In this document: positions 1 through 44,052 of the stretch, one piece after another
Layout: the number at the start of each line of letters is the position of its first letter
Position numbering within the stretch: the stretch's first letter is position 1
Assembly: GCA_965649765.1 (NCBI GenBank)
Contig: OZ287750.1
Location: 69,564,001 to 69,628,000 of the forward strand
DNA: 64,000 nt
From: Bispira polyomma
Lineage: Eukaryota
Reading direction: 5' to 3'
Notes under the pieces: generated by a model
The model's input: only the letters and a program-made list of their open reading frames with translations
The model's database searches: none
What the model was told of the DNA's origin: nothing
Program-made: the position numbers and the translations under genes

Positions 1-1099
1 GAGAATGTTTTAATTCTTGATTAATTTTTACTATACAAGGCCTTGTATTGCAAAAACAGTTATTTTTTTACTGTATTTAGATGATGGAATTTCCAATATT
101 GGTAGTAAAGCTTTGTGTACAAGGAGTGTGCTTTTTTTTATCCTAAACATAGTGGTGTCAACAGTTAACCTTATCATAAGTCAGCATGAATTTTGAGGCT
201 GTGTTTAACATACATATAGTCAACACAGGCCCTACCGCAGCATATCGTAGATACTTTCTAATGCAGTTTAATTTTGGATTTTAACAGGTTTTGTGTCCTA
301 TCTCGATTGGGTAGTTGACAGTTTAAGGAAATCAAGACTTTCTGCTGTTCAAGGCCTTCAGCAAGGCTACTGCCAACTTTTCCACGTAGATGTGAGGACT
401 GAGATTCCAAACCATGTCAGCAGAGGTGAGTGTGTTACCACTGCACAATGTGTAAACCTGGCTCATACAATCGATGAGAGTCCTTACATTGGGGTACTGT
501 CCTGTACAAAAGCAAGATGCTGGTATGTAAGTAGAGGAAACATGGATACTAAAATTAGATGTCAATACCAGCTTTTACCCAATTTCACAGTACATTTAGA
601 GTGGTAAGACGAAGTTTTGTGCTGGATGTAACTTCCAACATAGAACAAGGATACTTTAGAGATAGGATGCCTTTTGGGGTAAAGCTATTGCCTTATCTAG
701 TGATAAATTTGTCAGTGATGAAAAGATGAAAAAATCGCGTAAAATGCAGTTTTGTCCCAAATAAATATGTAATATGTATGATAAAACTATGCACCACTGA
801 TTTTACTTTTCTATATAAGGCCACATTTGACAACCAAAAATACACAATCAGCTTCAAACGATATTTTATAGTAAACAATATTTAAGCACACTTGTATTTA
901 GTTTCATCAAATTAAATTCGAACACATTTAACTCTGAAATTACAGAAAAATATAATTAGTGATCTAAGTACAGATACAATGAACTGCAATTTGCAAAGTA
1001 ATGCAATGTAAACTAACTGCAAGGAAAGACAACAAAAAAACAATGATTAAAGTTTTTACTTTTGATTTGGTTTTCAAAAATACAAATATTCGTTGTTGC

Positions 1100-1993
1100 T
1101 CATACTAGTATTGCTTCTTCATCCTTTTCAAACAGAGGCTGCAACTGCAATAAAGATGAAGAGGACAATCCAGGTGACTCAGAATCATGGCGATACTGTG
1201 ACCCCGAAGTGACATTTCCAGGCTGCGTGGGCAGAATAAAGGCAGACACTACACTGGTATCAAGAGCTGTCCAATCAGTGCTACATTCAGCTACAGTACT
1301 AGGAGCACCACCAAAAGTATCATATTCAGCCTTCTGGCACAGCGCAACCGTTACCTCAGGAATGTCTATGTCTGAAGGGAAATCATTGCTGAGATAAGTC
1401 TCCAGTGTATTCTCATTGTATAATAAATCGGCATCCAACTTGGATTGGAATGTCTCGGCATCACAGGATTTAGACCTTTGTGTCATCATCTTTCCTGAAC
1501 CTGTAGAAGAATGGGGCAAGTGATCTGAATTCACCGATTTAGATCTCATTTCAGACAACAGCTCTTTGTGAGAGTCACACTGTGCAAATCCTCGACGGGT
1601 GTGACCTTGATTTTTCCTATCAGATGTGATGTTGATCCGTCTGTGCTTCTTCTGCATGGCCAAACGTGTTTGGAACTTCTCTTGTCGGCGAGCAACCCTC
1701 CTCAATCTGTCGATGTCTTTCATATATTTGCTCATGCCATGGTCTGACATGTTCTTCTTGACAAGGGACCCTATCATCAGAATAATGGAAAATCCATATA
1801 TGAATATTACAGCACACACAAAATACAAGGCACCTTGACTGTCATAGTCATCGGTGGTAGAATTGTATCCACTAGCGTTGAATGTATCCAGAGACTCTAG
1901 TATCGTTGCTATGAATGTTTCATTGTCTAGTCTATGTATAGACAAATGAATATCATTTTTATCAGGTATTATTCTATCTTTGCTGACCATCAT
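1100..1993 (-). CDS. Single-pass membrane protein (297 aa), KCNE/MinK-like TM segment; paralog A
   Basis: Intact ORF with no signal peptide. Three N-terminal sequons (NET, NAS, NST), one hydrophobic segment (ALYFVCAVIFIYGFSIILMIGSLV) followed by KK and a basic helix, and an S/T-rich tail ending EEAILV. The ORF is preserved in the paralog at 49421..50320. Confidence 0.85.
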   Translation of the reverse strand: MMVSKDRIIPDKNDIHLSIHRLDNETFIATILESLDTFNASGYNSTTDDYDSQGALYFVCAVIFIYGFSIILMIGSLVKKNMSDHGMSKYMKDIDRLRRVARRQEKFQTRLAMQKKHRRINITSDRKNQGHTRRGFAQCDSHKELLSEMRSKSVNSDHLPHSSTGSGKMMTQRSKSCDAETFQSKLDADLLYNENTLETYLSNDFPSDIDIPEVTVALCQKAEYDTFGGAPSTVAECSTDWTALDTSVVSAFILPTQPGNVTSGSQYRHDSESPGLSSSSLLQLQPLFEKDEEAILV

Positions 1994-2118
1994 ACAGTCT
2001 CATTAATTTTGATCCGAATGTCAGGTTTGCCCCTCAGAACAAAATACTAGGAATATTGTAGTTGGCGTGGTGTTTATGTTATAAATAAAGTTAATTAGTC
2101 TGTATCTTAATGCTGACA

Positions 2119-2150
2119 CTGTAACCATGGTAAATTGCAGAGAGAAAAAA
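2119..2150 (-). promoter_or_regulatory. Putative 5'-UTR splice acceptor of paralog A
   Basis: The minus strand reads ttttttctctctgcaatttaccatggttacAG about 125 nt upstream of the ATG. The same arrangement is at 50449..50480 in paralog B. Confidence 0.5.
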
Positions 2151-19500: not shown

Positions 19501-21895
19501 CCTAGAATATGACTTTATGTATTACTTCACTTTCCATGTTTCTTTTAAGGTAATTAATAAAAATTACAATAAAAAAACAGTATAAGCAAAATAAGTAATA
19601 CAGAACAAACAAACAATGAGATAAAGAAAACAATGCATATTGCTTTAACCAAAACAACAATAGCAACAACAATAGAATATACAACATCCAAACTAATGGC
19701 TAGTGGTATTTGTACAGTTGCTACATCTTGGCTCCCTGTAGAATGTACGTTTAACAACAGCATCTACTTTTACCTTCATAAACTATTCATATCTACAAAA
19801 CCAGTGGTTGACAGACTAAGACAGACTCTGTTTCGAAATGTCTGACTGAGTTAGCAATGTGTAAACCTTTTATATTGTGTGTAGCAATTACACCACTTGT
19901 TAGTTTCACTCGACTGTATACAAGAAATACATTTTTTGAGTAACAATATCCACAAGAAAATGTGTGATATAACACATGTCCTTTTCCATTTTGGAGATTC
20001 AATTAACAGTGTGTTCACATTGTAAGAGTTGCTCTTATTTAAAAAATACATATAAGTGCATTCCTATATTCACAACCAACATTAATCAAACAGGCCTTTT
20101 AAAATTTTTTTCAAAAGACCCTATTAAATACAGTTATATGATTTTGATGAATTAGAAATCTGTCTAGCTGAAATTTTTGCTGTTTATTCTCATTTTAACT
20201 TTAGAAATTTATGACATAATAACTGGCCTTGTTTTCAAAAATAATATATATTCAAGCTGGATAATGTATATGAAGTATGTGAACATGACAAAAACGACAA
20301 GGTAAATATAACTTATATACTAAGTATAAACTTATAATGTTCATTTAATTTCTGGATTTTTTGTGACAGCCAAACCTCTTTATTAGTTTCATAGGTAACA
20401 CCTATATTAAGGCCTTGATATAAAAGAGAAGAAAATAGATAAATGTGTGTGTGCAAATGTGAGTAAGTTTAGTGGGAGAGGTCTCATTCCGCTTCAAAGT
20501 TTATACTCCCTATCCTTTATACTCCCTAACACCTGTTAGCGGCCAGGTACCCATTTATACACCTGGGTTTTTTTATGTTTAATTTAAAAATTACTGGTAA
20601 ATATATGTTGTAGCTATATTTGCAGTTTTGTTAGTGAAAGTTTTGTTTTTTTATTATCCTATTTTAGGTTTTTTCTACTTCAATATTGCAATAATTGTTT
20701 TTAGTTGATTGTTCTTATTCTATTTTTATTTAAAATTGTTTATTTCTATTAAATATTGAATTATTTTAAAAATACACCAAAAATATCCTTGCCCCATTTT
20801 TATTACATTATGAGCCCCACAAAAGAAACCCTCTTTTCAGAAAAACCTCTTTTTTGTGGCATTAATAAATTATTGTTGTAAATAAATTAAAAATATTACA
20901 TAAGTATTTATGGGGTGGAAGAAGTAATTATATGGTCCTGTTTTATCCTGGGTTATTTATGGGATGGAAGAAGTAATTATATAATCCTGTTTTATCCTGG
21001 GTTATTTGTTTCCCAACTTTGAAAATTTCAATGTTCACCATTTACAAAGAAATATCTTCAGTCCCCTGGTTTTTTATTGTTTCCCAACTTTAAACATTTA
21101 ACGTTCAACATTTACGAAGACATTTCCCTGCGGAGTGATATAGAGAGAATGCCCACCTGGGAAGAGAAGGACTTGGTGTGAAGTACATTAGCCCAGGGTA
21201 CAATAGCCAGCACTGTAGTAAAGTTCGAACCTGAGACCCTCTGATCCAAAGTCAAACTTTCATGAAAACATTTTTACTAATGTTGACCTTTGGGAAGATA
21301 GTGACCAAAAATTATTTAGTTTTAGGGCCCCTGTAAGAAATGTCTTTACTGCACATGCACACAATATTTAAAAGTTTTCTGATAAAATGGCACTTCGACA
21401 GTTACTCCAGAAGAGATCAACTTGGTCGGTAATATGTATAGGTTAAGATCCATGTTAGTGTTCTCTCCTTGGAAATAAAGTATAGTTACCAAGGTACAGA
21501 GTGACCACAAAAGGTCCATGAGGACACTGACCTATTTAAATTACACCATAACAGTTATACTTTCTTCTCTTTCTTCTACCAGCTTTTGTATCTAGTAGTG
21601 AGTATGCGTTTTAAGTTTGTTTCGGATACATTGGGAGGTATATTTTTGGACAAAAGCCTCTGAACAAGGGTTTATCAGATGCATTGAATACTGATGAATG
21701 TCCGTCTATATAAGACCGAGCCTTAACCTCTCGATGTCTGAGCAAAGCTTTTTGAACCAAATTACCAGTGTTCGAGTTCTCAGTCTACTGAGAGAAAGTA
21801 AAAACTAAGTGCACATTAGGTTAGGTTCCTAAAATTGTCTTGTATAATTGAAAATTACCCTGTAAAAGCTATATATGATACACTAATATGCTTGA

Positions 21896-22773
21896 AGGTC
21901 TAAACACACACAGCCGCATCCGGATTTTCTGGCGGAATGGGATTTAACTCCCATATGGGATTTATCTTCTTTGCAGCTATACTGACACGAATTATTCAGC
22001 CGAATCCTGCGTAATGAAGAAGATCAGTGGCTTTGTACAGTTTTAGGGTACTAATAGTATAATACCATTATTTTTTTTAAAGTATAACTGTTTAGAAGAT
22101 TGCAGTCATACATTTTATTATCTAAATAAAAGTCATGTAACATTGGTATCCATTATTATCTGTGCACAATTTCACTTTTTTCTTTGTAAATGTGCTGACA
22201 TATGTTTATGACAGACACTCGCAAGATTTATTATAAAGAATAAATATCTCACGTGGTTTTTGGGAAAAAGTAGATTCAACGTTCCCCATAAAAATACTTT
22301 TAGATTTTAGGTTGTTTTACTTTAAAACACTACATAAATATGAAGACTGACACCTCTAATGTATGCAATCTTTTAACACAAGCACATTGAAATAACAGAC
22401 CCACCAGTGCACTGGTAAATAATACAATTAATTCCTTGTCAAACAAATACGTTCTTATCTTTGGTTGAAGTCATGCTGTCAAAAATTGCCTTTACAAGGT
22501 TGATTTATAGAGAGTTTATTGTATATATATAAAATTACCTCATGTAGCTTGATACAAGGTTATATTTTTATATAGAGAGTTTACTGTATACATAATATCC
22601 TCAAAATATATCCGTCATGGATTTAGAAAAAGATCCGTGCAAATTAAATTCAGGTAGGATCTATAGATCCGCATCTGGATTCGGCTAAGTGTGTACCCCT
22701 GCAGTGTTCAAGATGTACAACCGGATTGGCGATCCGGATCTGCATCCGGATACAGCTGTGTGTGTTTAAACCT
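21896..22773. mobile_element. Non-autonomous Harbinger-type MITE (878 bp)
   Basis: TIRs aggtctaaacacacacagccgcatccggat and atccggatacagctgtgtgtgtttaaacct, flanked by tga/taa (degenerate TWA TSD). Confidence 0.8.
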
Positions 22774-24370
22774 TAAGTCTAACCATTAAGGGGCACCAGC
22801 GAACTGTCTGGGCAACCAACAATTTTCCTATAAGACAGTTTGTCCCACCACTTGCAGGAATTATGCGGTACAGTAAACTGAATGTTTCAACCCAACCACA
22901 AAAAAAAAAAGCATTAAGTGTACAAATAAATCTAACTAATGCTGTGGTTAGGGAGTTTAATAATTGAATTTACTTACAAATATGGAGAATGGGAGGGGAA
23001 CTTGGTAGCATGTAATGATAGAATAACACGTTATTGGTTAAGAATGATGGGCAGAAAAGGTGGTATGGGAGGTTGCACCTAATTAATTAAGGTAGTGTAT
23101 AATTAGTGGATTGACAAATAGTTTTATGAGGAGGTCCTGATGTATCCATTTAATTATACTATTTGGTGTTGTAATTGAATATATTTTCTTTCTGGCCGAC
23201 GTCACAATATTATTTGGGTGGGTCAGGCTTGATACTTTGCGTGTAATTGTTGATATATTATTGATAATAATACATAATTAAGTGTTAACACAGTTTTTAT
23301 AACTAAAGAATAGCCAAATGAGTTACTTATTGTTATGATATTAGAAAACACTTTTATTTTTCTTTTATGACAGTTTAATAGACAATTAAATTCACTTTTC
23401 TGTTTCATGTAACAATAAAATGACAAAAGGACTTAAACAAACATTTATACATAGTTATGGCTGTTCTTTGTTTGATCAATAATATGCTAGCAGTGAAGGA
23501 TGTTAATTACATGTCAGTTTTGTAACATATTGATCATTGTATCATTTATCCATAGCACAGGTTTTGTAAAAAAATTCTCATGCATGAATTTCACACAAAA
23601 GAGAGTTTTGATTTAAACATGGCATTGACTGAATGCCTCTGAAACATTTGTCAACTTTAATCTCTGCTCTTTTTAACTTTTTAATAACATGATTTTGCTT
23701 GGCATAATTATAGGATCATATGCTTTAGATGAATTATTAAACAAACACAAAAGAGGGGTTAAGTTACTAGAGAGTACAGGAGGTGGTATTCAGGAAATGA
23801 CTAATCAAGGTTTTGTCTTGGAAAAATGTATAGATTAAGCTATTTTGTGAATACCATCCCAGGGGCCATATTCGCAAAGGGTGTTTGTTTTAACCTAGTC
23901 TTCAGCTTCAAATTTGGGTTGAACAGGTTCAGATTTTGTTTTTAATACCTAGTGACAATCAGAAAAAATCTTTGTTCGGTGTTAACTTTACTCTCAACAA
24001 CAAGCCTAACAGTTGGCAGTCTTTAATATTTTAGACATAAATGGTTTGTATTATTTCAAAAGAGACTATTTTACAGTCTGTAACAAGTACAAGAATTAAC
24101 ATCTTGTACTGCCAACTTATTATTGATTACAGTCAGAAACAAGTACAGGAATTAACATTCTGTACTGTCAGCATATTATTGATAACTTGTTCAATAATTC
24201 TGCACTGTAAACAAATGGTTATTAGCAAAGTGGTGTACCTGTACCATTCAAACAAACATTTTTGGGTCAATATTTGAATCTTTATCACCAATAATATTGT
24301 GTAGTATTAAATTATATCTATATCTTTGGGTTATTTAGAATACTAAAAGAAATCGTATTTTGTAAATGGC

Positions 24371-24481: not shown

Positions 24482-27400
24482 AGGGGGAGACACATTGGTA
24501 GAATAATTGATGTACATCATTTATTAGGATTATCTAAGGTAATATTTGGCAGATGTATTTATGAAGGAAAATCATGCTGTGTATTATTAAATCATGCACT
24601 TTGCCAAACCTCGGAGTAATTTTTCCTTAAAAAAATATGGATCCGTCGGCACTAACTCTGCGTACTCAGCTGCATACTATATTGCCAGCTTTCCCACAAA
24701 CATGCCAGGGAAGAGATTCGAACCGATCATTGGAGATATGGGAGGCAAATGAGTTATCACTAATGATCCTAGTTTACTGTTATGACAGGGCATAATTTAA
24801 AGGAAAAAAATAAGCATGACTTATAAATACAACTTCTACTTGTTACTTCAATAATTATTTGTAGTTGAAGTATTTGTACAGAATACATTATATTTCATAA
24901 CTATTTTAAGGGGTGCCTATAATATTATTATGCAAATAACTATTAGTCTATATTATGTAATAGATATGGCATCCCAACAATATTTTTGATCAAGTATGAA
25001 ATAATATCCAAATTATAATTTTTGTAGTGTCATTAAGTCAAGGTAAATACGTCTTCAAAGCTTTAGCTGATAGCAATACCTGTATCTTCTTTTAACAAAC
25101 ATATATTTTCAGGGGGAAGGTGGAAATTGCACTGCATGTTGTGAAGATAATTATGCTGTTGGAGGTTTTGGTGAAGATTCTTTCACCCTGTCTTGAGTAA
25201 TCAGCAGCAGTAAGCAATGAGGGACAATTTAACTGGTAGTGTTGTGAATTCATTCCTTCTTATGTAATAAAACAGTGTTTTAATTGATTGAAGTTGGACT
25301 GTTTTACAAAGTTTCACTATATTGAATTTCCAAAAGGCAACCATTGTAATATAAACTGAAAACAGTACAAATGTCACATTATTGTCTGTTTAATGGATAA
25401 ATTCTTCTGTTACAATTTACTGCAATAGTAACATGACAAAATCTGATTAAAGTTGAATGGCCAATCCTGTGTGCCATCAGTGATATACCAACAAAACTAA
25501 CTGCTAATGAGATGTTATTGTTAGGTGCTATTGTATAAGAGACATATTATATAATTTTATTATAGATCTATGAATCTTCTCTGATAAATGTGATAGAGCT
25601 AACATATTATGATTTGCATTATCATTGTTCTGTTAGCAGGGAGTTTACTTTCATTTTGTATTCTAAAATTGCTACAACATGGTTTGTTGACCCAGAAGGG
25701 ACTTACACTACAGGCCTTAGCTTTACCTTTATGACCATCATGGCAGTCATAACTTAGTTGAAACATGTTTAATAATCCTACAATGAAACATTGCTAACAT
25801 TGATAATTATAATTTAGCTTCAGATTCGGTCATGTTAAGCTTCTTAAATCATCACAATGCAACGTCCAAGCACATCATATAGTGGTGGAAGGAATACAAG
25901 CAAAAGATTCAGTCTTTATAATGGGACAAATGTTGAAAACATAGGTTTTGGGTGTTTTTTTTTTTACAAAAGTCGTCTCATACCTGCAGGGAGATTAGTC
26001 TATTTCGAAGTCTATCCCGAAATCATGTATCCTTATTTTCTATATTTTGTAATTAGCTGTATCTCCTCATCAAACTTTGCCATTTTGTGGTGTTCTGTGG
26101 CTGGGAAGTTGCTCTGGTGATCAGAAGGTCAGTAGTTTAACTCCTTATCGGGGGAGTTGGTTTAGTGATCACAAGTTCTCCAGTTGGACTCCTGCTGATG
26201 CTGCTTGGTTCACTAGATAACTTCCCTGTTGAAAATATGAACATACCAGTGCATACTGATGACTACCCAGGCTATGTTGTAGGATACGTGATGACTTTAT
26301 TGATTTAGATGCTGCCCTTCACATAGTCGTCAATCGTCGCATAAACGCAGAATACTTCCTGTGTATTTCCGGAAAAGTTATTTATAAACAGAAGCAGAAA
26401 TAGAAGATAAATCAGGTAAGAACGTTAGAATTTTGAATACTTGATTAAAAATAATTATACCTGTGGCAATTACTAAAGAAGTGCCTTAGAATGAATTGCA
26501 TGTCAGTTAAAATTGTTATTATATCACAGAAAAAAGCACCACTGTGGGTGATAATATAAGATTTTGTCAAATACATCTGATATAAAGGTATTTTACAAGA
26601 AATTTCAAATACCATTGTATTGCAAGTGTTTAATTTAATCTATATAAAAATAACAGGCATTGTTTCAGTGTTAACATGTGTATGTAGGTCATTTAAAAAT
26701 TACGAATGAATACCTTTACTGGGAATACGTGCATACCTTTACACAGTATATTCTAACCAACAGCAATACCTGAAACCAGAATATTTTTAACTTTTATTTT
26801 GACTGCTTTACATTGAAAATGTTACACTGTTAGACAGTTGTACAGATAGGACAGTAAATAATCAAGTAAAATCAGTGTATAATCTAAGGTTGCAGTTTTA
26901 AAATTACTTTAGTATCAATTCTAATTACTGTACAAGTAGAAAATATCACTATAAATTAAGCATCAAATGTCAAGTAGGTATATAGCACATTTTACTAATT
27001 AGATTAAATACTGTGAATTCATTTCCATTGGAAATTCATATACAAATCTCTCTGTATGGCCAATAGTGAAAATTTATACCTGTGAATTCCTTACAACTTG
27101 TAAATAGAGATGAAATTTGCTTCTTAGGTTAAATTTTCACTTGTACAATATTTAATTGATACATGTATAATATATATACTCTTTGAAGCATAACCTTGGT
27201 TCACATTCACTGGTGACTCGCCAATGTTAGTTGAATCTCCTTCATTACTTCACGTGGAAAAGTTTGTCAGGTATTTGAAGTAAGCCAGTGGTTTACATTG
27301 CTTCAGCACTGATTTCTTCCACCCTTAAACTTGGCTGCCCTCAATATGACATATAAACTGTTGGCTACACAAGACTTAACTAAATTTTAAAATATGTTAC

Positions 27401-27583
27401 TATATGTAAAATCCTGTGTATTTACTGATTTTCCCGAGGGAGAAATCTGGCCATACAACAAATTATGTTGAAGATGTGACTCAAACAAACTCAACCAATT
27501 TGTATATTGTATTAGCAAACTTTATCAGTGATTCAATTATTAATGTTATTTGCATTAATTGTTTGTTCCTTATTTATTCAGGT

Positions 27584-28215
27584 ATGGAACTATCAGCACT
27601 AGAGACGAGCATCCATGAGTTTTCGGCATCTGGGTCACAAGAAGGATCCTCTCAACCTATCAGACCTACCAACTCAACCTCAACCTCAGACAGTAGAGCT
27701 ACAGGAAAACAATTAAAGAACTTTCCATGTGATGCAGTGGGTTGCAGCTACAGTAGTAAATGTTTATCTTCTTTGAAGAGACATACAATGCGCATGCATC
27801 AAGTAAGAAGATTTTCATGTGACCAATGTGCCAGTAAATTTGCTCTTAAAAGTGAACTCGGAAGACATTTAGCGTGTGTGCATGGGCCCCCTCTGCGATA
27901 AACAATTTAATCATAAAGATGACTATTGTGCACACATCAACAAGCACATGAATATGAGAACGTACAGCTGTAGCAATTGTTCCAGCAAGTTTCGTACACG
28001 CTCCAGCAAGCACATTCATCAAAAACGATGCCTTGCTAGTTTGTCTGTTTCCTATGTGTGGAATGTGCAAACTGACATTCAAGACAAAGGCAGATTTGGA
28101 TCAGCACAAGCAAAAACACAGTGTAACAAAGCATGACAGTGAAAAGTGTGGGAAAAGTTACAAATGGAGGAACAATTTGTTTGCACACAGTAAGAACTGT
28201 ACAGGAAGGTCATAG
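27584..28215 (+). pseudogene. Transposon-borne C2H2 zinc-finger gene (about 6 fingers, 2 frameshifts)
   Basis: Fingers FPCDAVGC..H....H, FSCDQC..H....H, CDKQF..H...H, YSCSNC..H...C, CGMC..H...H and KCGKSY..H...C lie across three consecutive frames. A splice acceptor ttattcAG is at 27581 just before the ATG, and a candidate donor cag|GTAAGA is at 26416. Confidence 0.85.
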
Positions 28216-28359
28216 ACAAATTTTTAAACTGTACGAGGAGTAGTTAATCTCCAGGTTTCATTTATTACTCTCTTTTAGTAATGTCTAAGTAAATACTGAA
28301 TAGACAGTGAATTTATCTTGTGTGTGCATTTTTTTATAAAGATTGTTTGATCTGAGATT

Positions 28360-29200
28360 TTACTGTTATTGTTGTGTTTACAGTTTTATTTTGCATTTTA
28401 TTGTAATTGTTGTCTTACTTGCAATATCAATACACACTATTGTAATCATATACAATTGTTTGATATACATTTGTTTATCCTCACATATACTTTCACTTTT
28501 TGGAAATTATTATTTTTAGGTAAAGAACACATAATGTTTTATTTTGTGTTTTATTGTAATTGTATGTCATTTTTTTTCTATTATCAATATACATTACTGT
28601 AATTGTATATAATTTTTTTCTATTATCAATATACATTACTGTAATTGTATGTCATTTTTTTCTGTTATCAATATACATTACTGTAATTGTACGTAATTTT
28701 TTTTCTAATATCTATATACATTACTGTAGTCATATACAATTGTTTATACATACATTTGTTGATCAACACATCTAGTTTTTTTCTTTTGTGATCATGTAAA
28801 AGGTAGTTATTTTAGGTAAATACAGTTCAAAACTAAGGTTTAATTTTATATATACTGTAATTGTTGGACATTATTGTTTATTACCCATATACATTATTAT
28901 AGTAATATACAAATTTGTTGATATACTTTTTGTTTATCTGCACTTATACATTTTTCTTTGGTCTACATGTCAAATGTGATTTTGAAAGGAACACATTAAA
29001 ATTAAGTTTTCATTTTGCATTTAACTGTAATTGTAAGTGTTTTTTCTATAAGCATTATTCATTACTGTAGTGCTATATAATTTTGTCTGTGCAGATTTGT
29101 TTGTCTACACATTTACTTTTTATCTCTTGTAATTTTGTAAAACTTGCATATATTTTAGTAAAGAACCCATCAAAAATAAAGTTATTTTGTTTTAATCTTA
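28360..29200. repeat. Degenerate AT-rich tandem repeats between the convergent genes
   Basis: ~43-bp units ttttttctattatcaatatacattactgtaattgtat, about 4 copies at 28550-28740, nested in longer imperfect repeats. Confidence 0.8.
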
Positions 29201-29727
29201 TTATTTTAGTAACTTGGATGTCAACTTTAAAGGAGATGCGTGACATTACAATATTCCTGTAAACACATAGCAGCCTTATATAATAAATGGTTTAGGGGAG
29301 TTTATTGCCTGGTGACCTATATTTCTTGTGGTCCAAGTGATTCTCTACAATAATAGATTGGAATTTTATAATTGTTATGTCTCACTAATGTGGTTTAGAA
29401 TCTTGTTTGTTCTTTCATGTCAGAAAGTTTGTCACTGTGGTTTACAGTGTTTTAGCATTGGTTTCTTTCAACCTTTAATTCGGCCACCGTGATATGAACT
29501 AAACTTTTGAAAATATATAGCATAAAACCAACTAAATTCTGATAGTTGTTATAAGATTTGCACCAGAGCACTGGAAGATTTGATATAAATTTCTTAATAA
29601 TAAACTAAAAAAAATTTCATAATTTTATGTTACTTTTATCCTAACATTTTCTATGCTGTTGAGCTTTGCATGCTTTCCACCTGAACCATTAATAGAGAAA
29701 AAATACCATCTATGGCATGTTATATAG

Positions 29728-32700
29728 TCAATTGTCTTCGATGTGTAGTCCTGTTAGCCTCTTTAACAAAGGAATTTTGCTTTCATCTAATTTGTAAAAC
29801 TGTCTCACAGGACGTGCTCTCTTTGCAGGTTCACTAACATCAGACAACTGCCCTCTTTTTCTCTTCTGTTTCCCACGTTTTCGACTAGGATAATAAAACT
29901 AATCATCACTGAAATGAAAAAAAAAGAAATTGTTTTATGAATAAACAAATCAGTTACTTAAAAAATGTGCACGTAGAACAAAGATAATAGTTACAAAAAT
30001 TATCAAATATGTACTCACTAGGCCATTAATGATTGTAGCTGTGTCACCTCTGGCTGCCCATTCCAAATTTCTTCATTTTGTTTGTAGAAGGTTCCTGATT
30101 ATCCTGTATACTTGGAACATCATGTTGTGGAAAGGCCTTCTTTTTCATTGTGATAAAAGCAAAGCCTCTAAAAAGGGATAAATTTCTTCATACTTTTTTT
30201 GAGTTATCATACTATTAAAATTAATACGATACATTTTGCATGATTACAAATAGGAATATACCGATTTATATGTTTTAGCAATTTAAATTTACTTTTATGC
30301 CAGAAAATTATGTATGAGTTACCCATTCGGTATGCGAATTGAATTTTAGCCTTTACAATGTTCAATTTTGACCATTTTTACATTTGACCTTGTTTTCATA
30401 TAAAGTGTCTTAAGTCCTTGTATGATAATTTTATATTTGTCATCTTTTACATACAAAAATGTGACCTTGAAGCTCTCCAAGGTGATGACAGATACTTCTA
30501 GGCCCTGACGTTATATCATGCTCATTATTAGTGTGTCACAATATTACAAGTTAAAGTTTATCTTAAGATTACATGTTTGAATCCATTTTTGTAGCCAGCA
30601 AATCACAAGCTGTAAAAAAACGGAAACTTCTGTAGGTTTCAAAATGTCACTGCCAGCAGAGTCCAAACTGCCAAGTGCCCTGGCATTGTAATGATTACCT
30701 GGAACCATTGCATACAGCTGCAGTCTTCGCTCAATGCCTGTTAGGAGACCTTCATATTCAACAAGTGATATATCCTTTACAAACAGGCCTGGGGGTGGAA
30801 AGATTGAAAAGTCAACATCCTTTAACAGCCATTCTCTGAGAGTTAGCAATTTATGTATCCGTTCTATTGCTGAAATACCAGGTTGATCAACAGCTTCATG
30901 ATAACCACGTATACAACTGCAAAATTTAGCCTCACTAATATCACCATTCTTTCTCATCTTTAACTTCAGCAGAAAAGGTCTTCAGTGCATATGCTGATGA
31001 TTGCCTGTCAATTATATCTTCCACCATTGGTAAACTAAGATCTGTTTTATTTTCTGGATCCATTGCGATTTTATGCCAAGCTTCTTTTTTAATACCAGAC
31101 TTAACAATTTCAGATTTGTAAACCTTGTATCGGCAATTTGTGATTTGATGATGGGGATCCAAGATGTCGAAATGATATTGTCCTATTTCCTTTATGAACT
31201 GTGGCTGTGAATACCATTCAATGGAATCGTTAATAGCCATAATGTCCATCTTATCATGAAAGGGTCCCGTTGATTTCCACTCTGCAAGTTTATCTGGCCA
31301 TATAACCTTTGCATAGATAGAATTGGTGTCTTCCTTTGACAAATGTTTCAACTGGGCTATGTAAACCAAACTAACATCAGTAATTTTGTTGCTTTCCTTC
31401 TGAGGTTTCTTGAGAGTGGTTGCTTCTAGGGATGACCCATCACCACACACTTGGGACAACAGGTTTACAAATAACTGTTTTGACAAACATTTAGAAATCT
31501 TGACTTTATTGGCTTTAAGTATGTCAATTACTGGTTCTATCATAGTTTTTATGTCTTTCACTGTGAAACTTGAATTCAATGTATGTGCATTTGATAACTG
31601 TTGACTGAACTCCGCCAAAGATGTTGATTGCCACTTTTCACAAACTCTTGGCGATTCACTACTTTTCAATACTTTAAGCATGTCTTCTTTACTTGAATCA
31701 TTGAGACAAAATTAATGCTCTTTTACTAAGGCTGGAGGTGCTAATTCCACACTTGTGGATACTTCAACTTCAGCAATGGGACTGTCTGTAACATTGTAAA
31801 ATATCATTTCAAATGTGTCTGTTAAAAATGCTTCATCTTGAGACATAAATAACCATACATCGTTTGGTGTATCCATAGTCACATTGGTAAGGGTTTCTCT
31901 TGCCACCTGTAAATTGACATCTTTGATAACTTGTAGAACATCAAGGTCCAATTCTTGACCTTACACATCACTTCTTGACTGTTAATAACATAATCCTGAA
32001 AATTCTCTTCTGTAGTGGTTTGAACATTATCAAGATGAGATCTTGGTTTGCCATGTGCCTGTTTCGTTTTGTGAAGTCTTTGTAAAATATCTCTTACAAT
32101 TGAATTTCTCCAAAATGTCTCTGTTGCAGGTTTAAGACTTCCAATGTAATATATTGTATCACCGCCATCGCATATTGCTTCTTTAATTTGTACATTAGCA
32201 CCATTATGCACGTTCATACTGCCTGGGAGTAATTGAATTATCTGCTATAGCTTTTTGTTAATTGTGGATTTCTGCATTTTTTAACCAATGTAAAGACCTC
32301 TTTTTGTAACTGTAGCATTGTTAGAGGATTTCCATCAGTATCTCTAATAGCTAATGAAGCCCACTGCCCATCATATGATGAAACAGGCAAATAAATGCCT
32401 TTGTTATGCAGTGCCAAAATCATGCATTTTACGTAAAACCTTTGCTTGTAAGCTGTAACCTTTTAATGCATAGCCAACTGGTAAAGCATGAGCCTGCTCT
32501 GCCTGATAGTGGCGGTACACATCACTTACAACCCAAACTAAAACCTCAGTGCACATGTTTTTGGTTCTTTCATTAGCTTCTTTATTTGCCTATTTGGTGG
32601 TAAAGTAAGCATTACCGAGGGATTCAACTTTTGTTTTAGTTGCCAATGTTACATCATTACTGCCATGGTCATGAAAATCTGGTAACCCTGTTAGTACATC

Positions 32701-35232
32701 TGTGTTATGCTTACAGCTTTGGGCTTTCAAAGGCTTTACTTCAGCTACCAGCTGTGTATTTTCAGCAATGAATAGCTTCATTTGGTCTTTCAGGATTTCT
32801 GTACTTGGATCTCTTTTTCCTGGTCTTCTTGGTTTGTCACCGTTGTAGAGATGTACACATAGAGCTAATATTATAAGCCACAGTGATTCATCATGTTTTA
32901 CTTTAAAAATGGTGGATGATTCATGATTCCAACAAATAAATATCAGTACGTGAGTATCTAGCACAACCATTTCAGAAAGTACTTGTGGAACATAACGTAA
33001 TGGAAATTCATAGAATACATCTGTGGTGAAGATCTTACCAGGCATAGGACACTTGAATTCTAGTCCAAGTTGTACTGGCCCATATGGTGATGTTCTGACA
33101 CTACCATCTGGGCTTACCATATAAAAAGGTTTATCTCCAATCATCAATTCATAAAAGCTGTCTTCAACAAAAGATAGCTTTGGATAAAGGGCTGGTAGAA
33201 CTTTACCCACTAATGTAGCAACTGCATTGATTTTATTGTCTGTCACATGTTTAAATAATCTTTGGGTTTCATCATCTACTAGTTTCTCTTCCCTTCTAAA
33301 TATAACTTTGTGCAAATGTTCTTGCTGTTTATTTAGTGTGTCTAATCCCATAGCTACATAAGCTGAGCTTCCAGTAACTTTAAATTATTTTCTCCTAACA
33401 AACCATTCTTTCGATTTTTGCTTCAGAAATCGAGTATGTAAATTCAAAGGATGTTCCTTCAAGCAAAAATAATTGAATTGTTTCTGTAAATTTAACACAT
33501 CACATTTGCAAAATCTGCTGTCACCATTCATTGAAGCGAGACAGCACATAATATCATCTGAGCATTGCAAAAGTTGTTTCACACAATGGTCTATTTGCAA
33601 AACCGAAGTGTGCAAAGCGCTTACAATTAAAGCATATTTGGATTTTCTCCAGTCAACTCCACCTAACTTTTTAAATTTTTCCTTTGCCATGTTTTACTTT
33701 ACTTTATGTTTTCTTAGTTCACATTGTGTCTTTGCAATAATTTTCAACTGACCTTGGTCATTGACTTTTTTTTACATTTTTCACCTGCTGACAACTCATA
33801 AAGGTAATTTTATCAATAATCAAACCTTCCAACCAGTTGATGTCCTTGTTTAATGATCCTAACTCTTCATCTAAACGATCATACTTTTCCCTCAGGGTAG
33901 GTTGGCCTTCAAAGCCAAAAAGATTGATCTCTGAATCTTTACCTGTGCCCCTGTGGTTTAGCTTTTTACCTAAAATATACATAGTGTATTAATTGAATAC
34001 CATAAAGTATTATGTCAAGGTAAATCTCTAAAACCTATATCGCATGCAAAGAATATATAACATGATCAAGGCGTTTTGGTTATGAATACCTTCTAAAAAT
34101 CAGAGGTTAAAGACGTCCATCTTACTGTACATGGCCACTTTTGGTCGATCATTAATGGGTAATAATTTGGAAATATATGTCAGCAAAATAGAAAATATAC
34201 CACACATACAAAATATGGTATCATTTAAACATATCTTTTATGCAAGTTGAAAAAAAATATTGTTTACTGAAAAATGCCATATCATATCAACACATACTTT
34301 GCGTACTTTCTGGAAACATGTTAACAAAGGTGGTAATATTATTAAATTTGAATCTTCTATAAAGTTTTTACCATCAACACAGATCTTGTGTGGCTTGTTT
34401 GGTCCAATTCGTGCTAATATTTCGACCATTGGCTTTAAAATTTCAGGGTTCACATCTTTACTCTGTAGAATCTCTGTACTTTTGTTATCATCATAGAGGA
34501 GGCTTAATGATGGAACAGCAAAATTTATGTGTGCACTAGATGGATGAAGACTGTCTGTTTTTTTCATCATTTAGTGATAGCTTTTCTACAAGCAGACCTA
34601 AATGTTTATAGCCTGTCAAAAAATTTGCCAAAACGTTTGGCTACAGGATTGTACCTCATCTGTCTGGTAGTGTCACAGGAAAAAAACTCCACTACATCCC
34701 AAAATAAAACCAAAGCAATGTTATCTAAAGGTATTTCTTTGTTTGCAAGAAGTTGTAAAAACTTAACAAAAGTAGAATTTTGGTTGTCTTCTTGTAAATA
34801 ATGCAATACATCTGGCATTAGTCCTATTATATCTTTCATTAAGCATTCATTAGATGTCATATCAACTTCTGATATTGCATCTCGCAGTTGTTCTGTCCTT
34901 CTGTTTGGATCATCGTTGAAAAGGCTTCTTTTGGAAGACTTAGAATTTTGTTCAATATGCATTTTCTTTGGTGCTGGACTTTTTGAAGATGTGACATTGG
35001 ATACAGTTATAGTTCGGGCATTCTGGTCAACCATAATAGTTTCAACGTCTAATTCTTTTGGTGTTATATTTATAACTTTTGACACTAATAATACTTTTGC
35101 AGTATTTGGGCAAATAGTTTTTTCCCTGTATTTTATTGGTAGGTCATTGTGGATCTTTAGCTAATGTTCTATCACAATTGTGAAAGATTCTTGAAAAGAA
35201 CAATATCCACACAGACAGAGTTCCCAATCCAT
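29728..35232 (-). pseudogene. P-element-like DDE transposase with embedded YqaJ/lambda-exonuclease domain (~1,500 aa, 4 inferred exons, multiple stops and frameshifts)
   Basis: Motif order: N-terminal CGYC..H....H finger; INFAVPS; KICVDG|KK across GT-AG intron 34371..33970; YqaJ domain; CTEVLVWVV...LPVGY; SSYDGQ; LDPHHQITNCR (DxxH); DRQSSAYALKTFSAEV; EAKFC; YNARALGSLD; basic C-terminal exon RKRGKQKRKR. Confidence 0.75.
32870..33425 (-). other. YqaJ/lambda-exonuclease-like PD-(D/E)xK domain within the transposase
   Basis: KQKSKEWFVRRK*FKVTGSS, SPDG, EFKCP, YVPQVLSEM, FICW and VKHDESLW are the family motifs in canonical order. Confidence 0.88.
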
Positions 35233-38200
35233 CACTGCATCTATACATAAAACATTATGACAAAAATGTTCACCAAGTTATTCCATAGCAAATTTACAAA
35301 TTTAAATTATAGCATTCATTAAAATTATATCATATAATTTCATTCCTTCAATTTTGACCTTCCGTAACTACACTTCTTAAAATTAATTTTGTAAGGCTTT
35401 TTTCAAAGTATTCACGGACAAGGTATAGCACTATTCCTGGTAAAGTTATGGTAATTTATCAAGGTATTCTTGGTAAAGGTATTTCACGGAGGAACTAAAT
35501 TGTTATATAATTATTAATACTGATAAACAAGAGCAATACAAAAAACATCAAACAAATGTGTTACCAATATCTTAAGATCTATGTAATAAAAATGTACAAA
35601 AGTCGATAATTTCCATGTATAAACAATGAAAACGTGATAATCCACTGTTTGTCTTAAACCTTTACCGAGAATACACAGGAAGTATTCCGCGTTTATGTGA
35701 CGATTGACGACTGTGCTTCAGAAGATGTCTTGCAGAAGGCTTATCAATATTTAATCCTGTTAATATGGATAGTGCCCATTTCAGTATAAAATATATCATT
35801 GGAACCATGATATATAACCAAATTGGATAAATGATACAAACAGAGGTCTCAAACCCATGTTTTAATGTGAAGTTTTATTATTTCCATATTTAAGGAAAAC
35901 ATACTTAAGAATAATTAGCAACTAAAACGTGTTTCAATGACCTCTAATTGATGATGTAAATATAATAAGATATTTTTTAATGTTATTTTTATTCTAAATA
36001 GCGCGCTGCAATCTTAGAAATAGTATGTAAGCTTTCATTGATTAGTTGGAAGGAATTAGATTTTGCTGAGTGTGCAGCCATCTTGGAAATAATATGTAAG
36101 GCCTTCATGGAGTGGTTCAAAGCAATTGACTCGTCCAAACTGAGAGGTGTCAGATATGCTTGAGTATATACTGACTATATCAACATTAGTATATTTCACA
36201 CTTTGTGCCTGTGTCTTTTTTGAAAGACAACTCTGGTTATTAAATTGTTATGCATTGACAATTTTGATGAGATCACAGTTCTATTTGACCTTAACCATAT
36301 CTTAACCTAACATAACTCTAACAATATTCCCCAATTATGGCTTACCTTAGACCTCTAAGGTAACCTTTTATTTATATCTTTCTTTTTTAACCAGTCTGGA
36401 TATAATTAGTATATAAAACATATATTTTCCCAACCACTAGTCTCTCTCACACTTTCACTCACACCAAACTCTCAAGGCACGATGTACCCTAGTTCAGTTT
36501 TGGTTGACATTCTTTCAACACGTTTGTGTCATATTGCGACAGGCAGTTCAGTGGAAACCAGAACAAGGTAGTTGGTCTTGGTTTACTACTGTGTTATGAC
36601 AGCAAGTGTACTGCCAACATTGCTCTGACTATCACAGAGGTAGGAGGTGAGTTTGTTACTACTGCAACACAGAGGCCCCCAAAACACTGGCTCTAATAAG
36701 AATGAGAATATATGTCTGTAGTCCATAGGACTACAAGCAAGGACATAAGTTTGAGCATTCACAATTTAGTAAATCTAAACTGTCGTATGTTTAAATTGTA
36801 GTGTCTACAGCCTATTATACATCTGTGTACAATAGAAGGATGTGTCACAAATTATTAAAAAAGCATGCAGCGTTTACTGTAACATATTATTTTTTTTTAT
36901 TTTTGTAAGAGACTCTATTCTGAAATATAGTTAACTGGAACTACTTTGTTTATTCCCAGAATCTAAGTGACAAAGTTGAGGGATTATTTTTGGTTACAAA
37001 AAGATAGATGCAAAGTTGTAGTTGTAATTTAGTTTCTCTCGGTCTTGTGTGTGTTTGATAACACACAGTGTTGTTATAATTGTATGCAAAGTTTTCTTAA
37101 CATAGTATTTGCCTGCATTCTGCAATCCCAATTTTACACAGGTACAGTAATTATCATTTTACCAGACTGAAGACAGGGTCTTGCATAAGACGACTTATCA
37201 GTGAAGACCACTTATCAGGTTTAAAGAAGACCACTTATCAAAGTTATTTATTCTGCTACTTGTGATAGGACCCTATGGCAGAAGAAAGCCATTTTAAGTA
37301 TAAATCAGAGCCTCTATTTTAAGTCTGGAGAGAAGCCAGGTCTCTGGCATTCCTGTGGTTTACCTACTGGGCCAGAGTGGCATAAAACTAGACATTTACT
37401 GCTTTACTTACAACTATTAAAATAAGTAGTTTATCATTAAAAGGTCACTTAGTCTGAATAGCCATCTAAAATTGTTGTTATCATTGTCTGATTAGATTTA
37501 TCAATATATTGCTTGTCAGTGCCGCTTCAACTTCATTACCTTTTTGTGTTATTTTATGACAGTTTCTAGACAGTTTCTAACATTGTAATGGGACCAAGTC
37601 TTTTCGCCATGTTGAACATCTATAATCAAGAAGATCAAATTACATGGTATAGATTTTGTTTTTCATGGCTCTGCTGAATATTGGGTACACTGCCTGACAA
37701 TTCATGTATGTTCATTAGTTTTAATCAAATATAGTTCTGCTGACTAATCATAATCATTTTTATTAATGCTGATAAATCTGGAACATAATTAGTTAGTAGG
37801 TGTATTAAAGGTGTATTGTGATATATAATGGGTTTTATGTTACCACCATCCTCTATACCTATATCTGTTTCACATTTACTGGTAATTTATTAATACCTTT
37901 TAACCAAAACAACATAGGGGAGGGGTTAATTTAAACAGTGAAGGGGTAACCGAAAATCAATTTTTAAGCTACCCTGTGAGGTAATCTTCAATTGTTGGGG
38001 TAACTTAAACTTGGCGGTAGGGTGTGGTGAAGTATAATTTTAACTTTTAACACTAATTGTCAAAAAGAGAGAATTATTATTATACTGCATAACCTTGTGC
38101 AAAACCAAATACACTGTTTTATCCATGCAAGGGGTACTTATCTCAAAACCTTAAAGTTTATTCTGTAGGTGTGATGAAATGAGGGCTAATTTGGGGAAAA

Positions 38201-38679: not shown

Positions 38680-41600
38680 TTACTCTGAGTCCTCCCCCTT
38701 TCCGCCAACTAGGGTCAATTCTTAATACACTAGATAGTAGGTTTCAGTGTGTCGAGCACAACAACTTTAGGGGCCTGCTGAATCAGTTCCCCATCCTAGT
38801 AAATACCCCTTTTAAAAAACTATTCTTGTTCCCAAGCACATACTTCCCACACTTTTTCCAATTAGCCAATCACTAATTAGACCACTTTTCATTAGAAATT
38901 GTGTCCCCACTTTTGGGTGCAATATTGGACCAAGCATTCAAAGGGTCAAACAAAAAGAAAATTTTATTTACTGGAATATATTGAAGGTTTTATGTTTCTT
39001 ACAACAAGTGATTTTATCTGTTTTTAATATATACACACTATGGGGAAGACGAAAGCACCAGATAGTGTTCCGTTATCTAAGAAGAAAATGACTTCAAAAC
39101 GTGGCGGCTCGACAAAGTTGAATTGAAAGGGGCATGTAACTCGACCCCATTAACCTGCCCTACACAGCAGGGCATTAACAATACCATGTTAGAATTGCGG
39201 CCACCCGTTACAGACAGATTTCCCTTGATTCAACCGGGTAACCACCACACTGCCCAGATGCATGCAGACGTCCACGCCACTCAGGCTTTGCCACCCAGGG
39301 CCCCTCTGGCGCACAACATCACGACTATCAGCGAGATGGCATCATCCCTCGACCGGATGTCTTGAAAACCTTACCTGAAGTCAACGCAGCAGTGAACCAA
39401 CGGCTAGCGGCTTATGATGTGCAGCTCAGAACAGACTTGTCGCAAGGTAAGACCTCCCTCAGGCAAAAATCCGGCTGCTTCAATACCACAGATGTTATTA
39501 CATCTGACCCTAAATCCCGGTGGCCCAACGAGGGTTGGATCGGAGGCACTGCTCGTAAACGATCCTGTTTTGATGACCTTACACTGTCACAGTGGGCTGC
39601 AGGGTAGTTGTTTAATATAGTGCAGGTCCCAGACGCCACTACCATGCGGAACATGATGTATCAAATGATTTATACGCTCAGAGACTCAGCTTCTCTTCCC
39701 TGGCCCGCTGATAGGTCAGGTTGGGCATTGAATATGCAAGAAGTCGAGGTGGGTCGGTTGGATTGGTTGAACTCCACCCAGTGGGCTCTAAATCGCATGA
39801 ACACCTCACAGTTGGCTCTGATTAATGGCCACGTCGCACAGGCCCCACAGGCAGCACAGAAGTCCAAAAATGTATGTAAATTTTACAACAATGGCACTTG
39901 CAACCACGAATTCGACCACGGACAGTATCGTCATATATGTAATCAATGTTTTCGCTCAGCTAATAGGGAGAACACGCACCCAGAACTTAAATGTGTCAAG
40001 GCGAATGTTTCAAAAAGATCTTCAGACAAGCAGACACCCAGCTAGGGAGTTGGTCGCCGACCAAGTGAACAAACTTACAGAGAGAGTAGCGTATTTAAGG
40101 GTATTAGAAATAAAGTCAATAGTTATAATAATGTTGTGTATATTGATAATTGTAATGTGAGAAGGCAATAGTCAAATAATTTGAAAAAAATCACATAGGG
40201 CCCCTCAGAGGTGCCATAGTGTGAAAGACTATAATGTAAAAGCTAAAAATATACATTCAATTGGTAATGTCAAAACTATTGATTCTGGTGACTCTGAACA
40301 AGGCTGTGACAGGTCTGGTAGTGGGGAATCAGACATGATGAAGCATCATGCAGAAATTTTCCCAAGAGAGGGAAATTTCTATGAAATGGGGAATCAAAAT
40401 ATTAGACAGAATGGCCACCATGAGAGTGGGAATGGGCTCACTAAAGATCGTATTTTGGAAAGACCTCAAAAATCTGAGATTACCCAACTGGGTTACCATG
40501 ATAATGGTAACAATAATGTTTCAATTAATATACACGGGCCTAATTATAGACACAGGTATTGTTATGTTCAAAGACCAGATGTCAATCAAGGTGACAAGCA
40601 GTATGTGTTCGTGTATGGAGGCACAATTAAGACTAAATGCATAGTTTCAGTAATGAACTATGAATTCTATGATTATCATGATATTAACGCCAAGGCTAAA
40701 GCATTGGTATATTTAGAATTTCCAAATTGTCGTGACATGTCAGGTTTTTGTGCTAGGGAGTGGGACAATGCAGACAGCAATTTGATTTATACAGGTCTAG
40801 ACGAGTTACCAGGTTTCCAACTGAGGGTGACTAAAGGACAAGGAATAATGATGACTGGTCATAAATGGAACAGGGTCTAAAAGTTTAATGACAAAGAAAT
40901 AATAGGGGCAGCAAATGCTCATGACAATTACAACAAAGACCTGGCATGTCACAAGGCACTTGGTTGTGCTTACTCTCAATTTATATGTAATATTATAGAA
41001 AAGATAATTTGAAAATGATGATATACATGTTAATAGTAATAAAGTTCAGAAACCCATAAATAAATGGGATAAAATGCACAAGGTGATTTGTACTTCCGCT
41101 CCGCTCATTAACAACCTGGATGGGCTGGTGGCCCCAGACATAGAAGTTAATTCTTCAAAAACTTTACCTTGTAAGGACATTGATAACCTTGATAAGTACA
41201 CAAGCTTCATTAAGCTTATTAGCACTCCATTTCAATTTGTAGGGCCAGACAGAGATTCGGTTCTGCTAGAAAATATTAAGGACATTACACTCTCTGCAAA
41301 TATCATAAGGGACACAAGACTTCCAAATTACAGGCAGGCACGAATACCTGTCAAATCCCAGGTAAACATCGCGGCTTGGGAAAACATAATGCAGGACCAC
41401 CCAGACAAAATAGTAACCCAATACCTTAAATTCGGTTTTCTGTTGTCCCTAGAGAACGCAGACCAATTACAGGTTAAACAGGTGACTAATCATCACTCTG
41501 CTCTTGAATACTCAAATGCGATTGTTCAATATCTAGACAAAGAAAAGTCTAAAGGGGCCATGTTAGGTCCAGTGGAAGTACTTTCGGATTTACGTTACCA

Positions 41601-42950
41601 CTGTTCCCCCCTAATAACCAGACCGAAGGACCGTGACAAACGTAGAGTTATACTAAATCTCTCTCACCCATTGGGGGATTCAGTAAATGATCATGTTAGC
41701 AGAGATACCTATGATAACACAAAATGTCTCCTTAAGTTTCCTAACATAGATACTATCACTTCTAACATTTTAAAATTTACTGACCCAGTAATGTTCAAGG
41801 TCGACATAGCCAGAGCTTTCCGTAATTTGAGAGTAGACCCTGTTAATGCTCTTAAACTTGGTATATCTCACGACAATAAGTACTACGTTGATGCTGCAGT
41901 CGTATTTGGGTGGGTGCACAGCAGTGCCGTATTTCAGCGCTGCTCGGACATTGTCGCAGATCACATGAGAAAGCAAGGATTTGACCTTTCATGCTACATT
42001 GACGATTATATTTGCGTCTGTCAAAAATCGGATGCACAATGAGGTTTTGACATCCTATGTAAATTACTTAAAAACTTTGGTCTCCCAATAAACCCGGTGC
42101 CTCTGTGGCCTAGTAGTTAGCAAGCATTGCGCTTCACAATCACTGGTCTCTCACCTCTGGGTGGCATGGGTTCGAATCCTGTTGATGCCAATCTGGGTAA
42201 GGTGGTAGTTCCTTACTGTGGGCTGCTGGTTTCAGTGCAGAACCTTGACCGACTGTATGCAGTGTTTCCTCCAGCGTTTCCAACTACCCGTCCCAATATA
42301 GCCTACTAAAAGGTACTAGAGTGGACGTTAAATATCCATATTCAAATATTCTCCCAATGAACCCAGAAAAAATTGCACCCCCCTCTACACAGGTTACATT
42401 CTTAGGTATCGACATTAACATTGATGAGGGCACTATTAGTATAATCCCTGAAAAAATAAAAGAAATTCAACATATTGGCATTGACCATTTTACCCATGGT
42501 TTCCACACTTTTCGCAGGTCAGGTGCAACATTAGCATTCAATAACAATATTTCTTTACAAAATAGTATGGCACATGGGCTTTGGCGCAGCTCAGCAGTTT
42601 GGACTTATCTTCAATCTACATCACAAGCTGCCTCTGTGATTCCTCACACTTTTGCAAACATTGTCCCCTCCTCTTTCTAACTTGGGTTTGGGTTCATTTA
42701 AAATCTCAGCTACCTCTTCAATTTTAAATATTTAATACTGATTACTGTATATTGTACATAGCCATACTAACTTGTACAGAAAAAACCCCTCCAAAACAGT
42801 ATCTTTTCATGGTCTTATATCACCAACCATAGACACTTCGATATCACCAACTTACTTTGACTACACATAGGGAACTAGATAGATATAATCCTAGACTTAA
42901 CCGTCTTATTTTAAATTCCACCACGTTGAGCAGCAAGTTAATTTGTTCTG
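38680..42950 (+). mobile_element. DIRS/Ngaro-like tyrosine-recombinase retrotransposon, internally deleted; outer boundaries approximate
   Basis: gag 39040..40045 with CKFYNNGTC..H...HICNQC finger. RT 41074..42460 (RRVILNLSHP, FKVDIARAFRNL, FGW, YIDD, FLGI). YR C-terminus 42475..42680 (HTFRRSGAT, HGLWRS, VWTY). RNase H and the YR N-terminus are missing. Confidence 0.92.
42096..42349 (+). mobile_element. tRNA-derived SINE inserted in the RT
   Basis: A box (tggcctagtagtt) and B box (ggttcgaatcc). The 15-bp TSD is tctcccaat(a/g)aaccc at 42081..42095 and 42350..42364. Removing the insert restores GLPINPEKIAPP. Confidence 0.9.
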
Positions 42951-43530: not shown

Positions 43531-44052
43531 ATATGTCATGGTAGGAAGTCCAATATGGTAGAATTTGGAATTCTACTGGTAGAAAGTTCAATTGAAGTTT
43601 CTACCGGTAGAAAGTCCAATTGGAAAATTTGAAGAAAAAACAAGAAAACACAATCTGTGATTTATGTTTTATTGTTTAAAACAAATGGAGTAAAGGGCTT
43701 TATACTAAAAGGTACCTGGACTAATTAATGATGTTTGCATATTTGGTTTGTATTACATAGTTGTACAGAGTATAGTTTGGCAACAATTGCATCAACTATC
43801 TTGTCATGTTAATGCTGTGGAAAACAACAAGATTCGCAATATTTTAAATTTCTGACATCTTTGTCATTAAAATATAGATACTTTGACAAAGTTTTCTTAT
43901 TATCATAAAAAAAAAATATCGAGTCAGTAATGTAAAATACATTTTCATTTTTGTATATAACAAACAGAATTGGACTTTTTACTGGTTGAAAGTCTAATAA
44001 GAGTCTAATAAGAAGAAAATTTACCAGATTGGACTTTGTACCATATACATTT
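43531..44052. mobile_element. MITE-like element with repetitive inverted ends
   Basis: atggtaggaagtccaatatggtagaattt versus aatttaccagattggactttgtaccat, with internal (a)aagtccaat repeats. Confidence 0.6.

Follow-up and report, generated by a model that had tools for sequence, protein, structure and literature searches.

DDE transposases differ from one another mainly in how the non-transferred strand is cut, and we know of no eukaryotic member with a dedicated second nuclease inside its catalytic fold. Here we describe a transposon family in which a lambda-exonuclease (YqaJ) domain is predicted to lie within the RNase H fold of a P-like transposase. It is represented in a stretch of 64,000 nucleotides from Bispira polyomma (assembly GCA_965649765.1, contig OZ287750.1, positions 69,564,001 to 69,628,000, forward strand), hereafter the window. 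A decayed DNA transposon spans 26322-35715 of the window (9,394 bp), with a transposase gene inside it. A preliminary description of this locus, made from the sequence alone, had joined the gene fragments into one P-type protein with YqaJ nested in the catalytic core.

Target-site duplications (TSDs) are 7-8 bp long throughout the P superfamily. The P element itself makes a 17-nt staggered cut and an 8-nt TSD (PMC2577343), and in its transposase the first two catalytic residues, D230 and D303, are 73 apart, while Asp444 binds guanosine triphosphate (GTP) (PMC8230255). Transib elements are recognised by CAC ends and 5-bp TSDs (PMC1131882). A YqaJ domain is carried by ISL2EU, of the PHIS group (PMC4482050). 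In Tn7, the restriction-endonuclease-like TnsA cuts the non-transferred strand and TnsB cuts the other (PMC13598128).

A search with a 354-aa piece of a second copy from the same genome (E<=0.001) matched 644 proteins, many of them 1,200-1,700 aa long, in hosts including the gastropods Batillaria and Littorina, the mussel Mytilus, the annelid Owenia and the lancelet Branchiostoma. All three catalytic residues (D/D/E) are held by 45 alignment rows, here called intact. These homologues (1,039-1,689 aa) have a common order: the first catalytic Asp (D1), a helical stalk, YqaJ, strands beta2-beta4 with the second Asp (D2), a second insert, a DxxH motif and the catalytic Glu. The insert of about 470 aa noted in the preliminary description fits a D1-D2 distance of 494-587 aa in the intact rows, against 73 in P. 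The distance from D2 to the His of DxxH is 171-474 aa, with a second insert of about 170-470 aa, and that from His to Glu is 160-175 aa. As had been proposed, every intact homologue carries YqaJ nested between strands beta1 and beta2, and the domain lies between D1 and beta2-4, in identical order, in all 61 proteins that have both segments. Single uninterrupted, intron-free open reading frames (ORFs) encode P0013, P0049, P0135 and P0139, and three annotated homologue genes have introns solely 3' of the catalytic core, so the architecture is independent of the joins made in the window. Signs to the contrary were sought: YqaJ was found neither as a separate ORF nor as a nested element, and the flanking segments model as one fold.

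Pfam recognises little of these proteins, with weak PF21787 matches in 11 of 35 homologues and the DDE core otherwise invisible. Neither the 35 homologues nor 10 N-terminal parts gave a THAP match; some have a single C2H2-type finger. Relatives of P0013 were not found in viral and prokaryotic contigs by a search reaching close relatives only. An unnamed cluster of 58 members in the ESM Atlas is probably this transposase family.

The structure of P0013 residues 175-1365 was modelled with AlphaFold from an alignment of 88 sequences, with a predicted local distance difference test (pLDDT) of 88 and a predicted template modelling score (pTM) of 0.81. In the model the split strands (beta1 23-32, beta2 518-526, beta3 537-545, beta4 571-577, beta5 962-968) form one RNase H fold, into which a lambda-exonuclease fold is inserted. 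The Drosophila P transposase ranks first among the structural matches (Z 30.2, root-mean-square deviation 3.0 over 326 residues, model 1..1179 against chain 201..569), and the isolated first strand of the model aligns with the P region containing D230. RAG1 (11.0), BbRAG1L (10.5), HzTransib (9.7) and Hermes fall within Z 9.7-11, and Foldseek is concordant. In a sequence search, a C-terminal profile found its best Protein Data Bank (PDB) match in P (residues 317-444, E=0.034), with both DxxH and the helical insertion in the alignment; the P/THAP9-like catalytic fold of the preliminary description is borne out by both comparisons. Residues vary in the column for the GTP-binding Asp444 of P (E 28, Q 12, R 8, K 7 and D 6 of 87). 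Lambda-type exonucleases match model residues 215-421 (Z 14-15), and helices at about 55-178 and 491-511 bundle into the stalk. The beta1-beta2 hairpin of an RNase H fold can accommodate about 470 residues. Viral structural neighbours of the YqaJ domain are just 11-19% identical, so no specific donor is named. No fold could be recognised for the second insert, which lies between beta4 and beta5 (best Z 4.4), and SAP-like motifs guessed there are unsupported.

The catalytic residues of YqaJ are kept across the family (Asp, Glu and Lys each in 71/72, motif I Glu in 64/68). Near-invariant W/R, TGS and Q residues align with the phosphate-pocket residues of lambda exonuclease, and we take them to form the same 5'-phosphate pocket. 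Judged by this conservation, the nuclease is under selection. DxxH is invariant (D 87/87, H 87/87). Mean identity among homologues is 35% for YqaJ and 40% for the DDE core. Trees of the two mostly agree, with 13 of 19 supported YqaJ splits shared and 3 conflicting, which points to one old acquisition of YqaJ.

Family members with terminal inverted repeats (TIRs) are 9-16 kb long, with CAC...GTG ends, 5-bp TSDs and a transposase of 1.3-1.7 kaa. In other assemblies, clear TIRs of about 25 to 629 bp bound five elements, each starting CAC and flanked by an exact 5-bp TSD; similar but weak ends were seen on a sixth. In the lancelet element L068 the 629-bp TIRs are 99.8% identical. TIRs of different members share CAC alone. 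A C2H2 zinc-finger gene is present in all related elements read at the DNA level, on the opposite strand and downstream or upstream of the transposase. In the gastropod and lancelet genes (L066:14440-15465 and L068:14314-15126) the positions of two C-terminal introns correspond, suggesting either that the gene structure is old and shared or that horizontal transfer took place.

The Bispira genome (1.04 Gb) holds a second full-length copy, about 91-94% identical, with later insertions within it. One is a 4-kb endonuclease/reverse-transcriptase long interspersed nuclear element (LINE) directly 3' of YqaJ (L031:619-4613, the C2 copy), at the point equal to window 32586/32587; a further insertion of about 13 kb lies near window position 30020. 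The C9 copy is internally deleted, with element bases ~16-3836 fused to ~9045-9394. The 24-nt element end has 174 genome matches at <=1 mismatch (control, 0). Among 15 independent insertions with both ends, TSDs are exact 5-bp repeats in 11, have one mismatch in two and match over 6 bp in one; the remaining insertion has none. They are mostly AT-rich. At C9, 10.62 Mb, lie fragments of a second, more divergent transposase family (L037-L040), 52-68% identical in amino acids and partly inverted.

The element in the window contains the following features.

26317..26321: left TSD, 5 bp, CTTCA
26322..26377, plus strand: left TIR, 56 bp, starting CATAG where the family form is CACAG
27410..28215, plus strand: tandem C2H2 zinc-finger ORF, about five fingers, frameshifted, convergent with the transposase
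28394..29142: AT-rich repeats between the 3' ends of both genes, 42-bp tandem and about 170-bp dispersed
29728..29898, minus strand: last exon, basic C-terminal tail matching homologue C-termini
30547..31190, minus strand: beta5, DxxH (31159), P-type helical insertion domain (DRQS 31009) and pre-Glu YNAR (30690)
31191..32360, minus strand: second insert, beta4/D2 to beta5, variable, partly helical, no fold match
32361..32565, minus strand: RNase H beta2-beta3-alpha1-beta4 and D2 (32372), one frameshift; PF21787
32815..33430, minus strand: YqaJ/lambda-exonuclease domain, motif II Asp (33108) and ExK (33060/33054) intact
33431..33969, minus strand: helical stalk, bundled with the helix after YqaJ and carrying the nuclease out of the beta1-beta2 hairpin
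33970..34371, minus strand: predicted phase-1 GT-AG intron, 402 bp, splitting the D-G-K-K motif
34372..35232, minus strand: N-terminal region and beta1 with D1; single C2H2-type finger, no THAP; stops and frameshifts
35660..35715, minus strand: right TIR, starting CACAGTC
35716..35720: right TSD, 5 bp, CTTCA

The two 56-bp TIRs are 89% complementary. The transposase fragments are interrupted by stops and frameshifts, and full-length homologues are collinear with them from 35211 to 30601. Six-frame translation and the raw sequence verified the places and order of all motifs given for the minus strand in the preliminary description. Profile searches were run piece by piece and exon by exon, not on a joined or consensus protein. 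The YqaJ profile matches 33381-32815 (E=3.6e-68), and further matches cover beta2-beta4 (32565-32301, of which beta2-beta3 is 32565-32419) and the DxxH-to-Glu region (31180-30658). In pairwise tests the last exon matches homologue C-termini near 29847-29737 (E about 1e-4 to 1e-5). Pfam finds YqaJ (weakly) and C2H2 fingers in the pieces, and nothing else. The catalytic Glu is missing, as 36 nt that are present in the second genomic copy have been deleted after 30659, and the motif I Glu of YqaJ reads Lys. The window element is therefore dead, a once autonomous copy of an old marine-invertebrate cut-and-paste transposon family. The preliminary description had overlooked the loss of this Glu, the second large insert, the element ends with their 5-bp TSD and the second gene. 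No viral genes (capsid, polymerase, others) were seen in it, and a viral or proviral nature was rejected on this ground.

The predicted intron at D1 runs from GT at 34371 to AG at 33971-33970, and its removal restores D-G-K-K, as the preliminary description had it. The D1 codon is at 34375-34373, the D1 profile match is split by the intron (34447-34364 and 33970-33884), and homologues are continuous across the junction (P0049 residues 266/265, P0013 205/204). The intron is shared by the second genomic copy and absent from all six homologue genes checked at the DNA level. On the minus strand the identical 8-nt word GGTAAAAA stands at the donor (34372-34365) and the acceptor (33970-33963). With this repeated word at both splice sites and no counterpart in the six homologue genes, the intron resembles one gained within a single lineage where a splice site had been duplicated.

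Compared with P and THAP9 (6P5A, 6PE2; PF21787), the family has the same RNase H fold, helical insertion domain, DDE order and DxxH, and belongs to TIR-bounded cut-and-paste elements with ends starting CA. It is unlike them in its stalk and YqaJ of about 470 aa between beta1 and beta2, the second insert between beta4 and beta5, a variable residue at the Asp444 position, a separate C2H2 gene and a protein about twice the length of P. The preliminary description needs one qualification: because its TSD is 5 bp (8 bp in P), its ends are CAC and THAP is absent, the family is P-like rather than a P element, although it functions as a cut-and-paste transposon of the P clan.

CAC...GTG ends and 5-bp TSDs are shared with Transib/RAG1, and we take the convergent two-gene layout to recall ProtoRAG. 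The family differs in its distant fold, in AT-rich rather than GC-rich targets and in a second gene that encodes a zinc-finger array, not RAG2. Sequence and profile searches gave no RAG or Transib matches to the transposase. In comparisons among the family TIRs, a heptamer-spacer-nonamer like that of a recombination signal sequence (RSS) was not conserved. The Batillaria element L066 opens with the exact RSS heptamer CACAGTG (L066:6094-6120), with no convincing nonamer after it, and the others diverge past CAC; an RSS-like nonamer was rejected. The working rule that CAC ends with a 5-bp TSD mean Transib is broken by this family, so non-autonomous elements in the genomes of molluscs, annelids and lancelets may have been assigned to the wrong group.

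ISL2EU also carries YqaJ (PMC4482050), in a second ORF beside a Harbinger/IS5-type transposase with THAP, and has GG ends and an AT target. KolobokE has a TTAA TSD and a nuclease downstream of its DDE domain, neither of which is found here. In both, the nuclease is outside the catalytic fold, whereas in this family it is inside. The resemblance to Tn7, where the strand not cut by the DDE transposase falls to a nuclease of restriction-endonuclease fold, is a functional analogy with no homology claimed; Tn7 is bacterial, its subunits are separate or end-fused, TnsA is an endonuclease and TnsC is required. Lambda exonuclease and YqaJ proteins (PF09588; 1AVQ, 3SYY) share the fold (Z 14-15), the E...D...ExK catalytic motifs and the phosphate-pocket motifs, and differ in that the present domain is embedded on a helical stalk inside a transposase.

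On balance, we lean towards the view that YqaJ frees or trims the non-transferred strand within the transpososome. The DDE site would nick the transferred strand at the CAC end, followed by strand transfer with a 5-nt stagger, and YqaJ in the same transpososome would act at the junction of element and flank, on the strand that bears the 5' phosphate. The nuclease would need 5'-phosphate DNA ends, which excision would create at that junction. The division of labour between TnsA and TnsB would thus be built into one polypeptide, replacing the 17-nt staggered second cut of P, and the zinc-finger protein would probably give end recognition, as THAP does for P. Several points weigh against this. 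The intact DDE and DxxH residues might suffice for cutting both strands, as they do in P, and the evidence for the part played by the zinc-finger gene is its linkage only. Normally, lambda exonucleases act as trimers and require a free end, and TnsA is an endonuclease. We put forward more tentatively, at rather less than even chances, the wider proposal of an undescribed superfamily-level lineage: a P-clan DDE enzyme with an internal lambda exonuclease as obligatory second excision nuclease (a one-chain TnsAB), Transib-like ends and 5-bp TSDs reached by convergence, and a zinc-finger end-binding protein.

Alternatively, the DDE core may excise the element alone and YqaJ may then resect donor ends 5'->3', favouring gap repair from the sister chromatid, restoring the donor and raising copy number. 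Resection for recombination is the natural role of lambda exonuclease, and the 5'-phosphate exonuclease pocket is conserved. The internally deleted C9 copy would fit aborted gap repair, although ordinary P elements also have internal deletions. We regard resection as somewhat unlikely, as nesting in the catalytic fold would be costly for an accessory repair enzyme, and in ISL2EU and KolobokE the nuclease sits outside it.

It is less probable again that YqaJ acts away from excision, in processing the target or integration gap, in degrading excised or foreign DNA, or as a DNA-binding clamp. Nothing direct ties the domain to the excision step, and its role in ISL2EU is also unknown (PMC4482050). 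However, the near-invariant catalytic residues oppose a purely structural role, and the precise 5-bp TSDs oppose nibbling of the target.

The CAC ends and 5-bp TSDs (PMC1131882), with an RSS heptamer match of 6/7 in the window element and 7/7 in L066, could suggest a Transib/RAG1-type element, or ends mobilised by a RAG1-like transposase elsewhere in the genome. We consider this very unlikely. The fold has Z 30.2 to P against 9.7-11.0, and sequence comparison aligns the insertion domain to P. Only CAC is common to the TIRs, the TSDs are AT-rich, and each of five other elements encloses this gene pair within CAC TIRs of its own. A Transib/RAG identity of the transposase itself was rejected, the fold being far closer to P.

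An origin of YqaJ by nested insertion, or of the joined protein as an artefact of reading through a pseudogene, might be suggested by the many stops and frameshifts of the window copy and by the LINE right after YqaJ in the second copy, but the order is identical in 45 full-length homologues and several intron-free ORFs, which refutes a nested-element origin, the LINE is not in the window copy, and the chance of either is negligible.

Searches of accessible full-text papers, with Repbase, Dfam and subscription papers outside their reach, found no description of the architecture. A survey of mollusc transposons is without mention of YqaJ (PMC10294476), and public annotations of the homologues read hypothetical or YqaJ-domain protein. 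The architecture has probably gone undescribed so far; for the undescribed lineage suggested in the preliminary description, the support consists of negative literature searches. The family would be a new variant of DDE transposon and possibly a new superfamily. It may explain the function of YqaJ in ISL2EU and KolobokE, and as young intact members such as L068 exist, the question of the nuclease is directly testable. Intact members include the Branchiostoma belcheri element around KAI8490370.1 and the Batillaria element around KAK7507914.1.

Elsewhere in the window, paralogous ORFs of about 300 aa each lie 48 kb apart (1103-1999 and 49424-50329, minus strand), with one predicted membrane segment each, a local host-gene duplication. 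Small inverted-repeat units at 21895-22774, 23464-24183 and 43538-44114 are probably unrelated non-autonomous DNA transposons. By eye, decayed ORFs at 39608-42677 (plus strand) resemble a DIRS-type or other reverse-transcriptase element, and a fragment at 9209-9739 (minus strand) is like a LINE reverse transcriptase.

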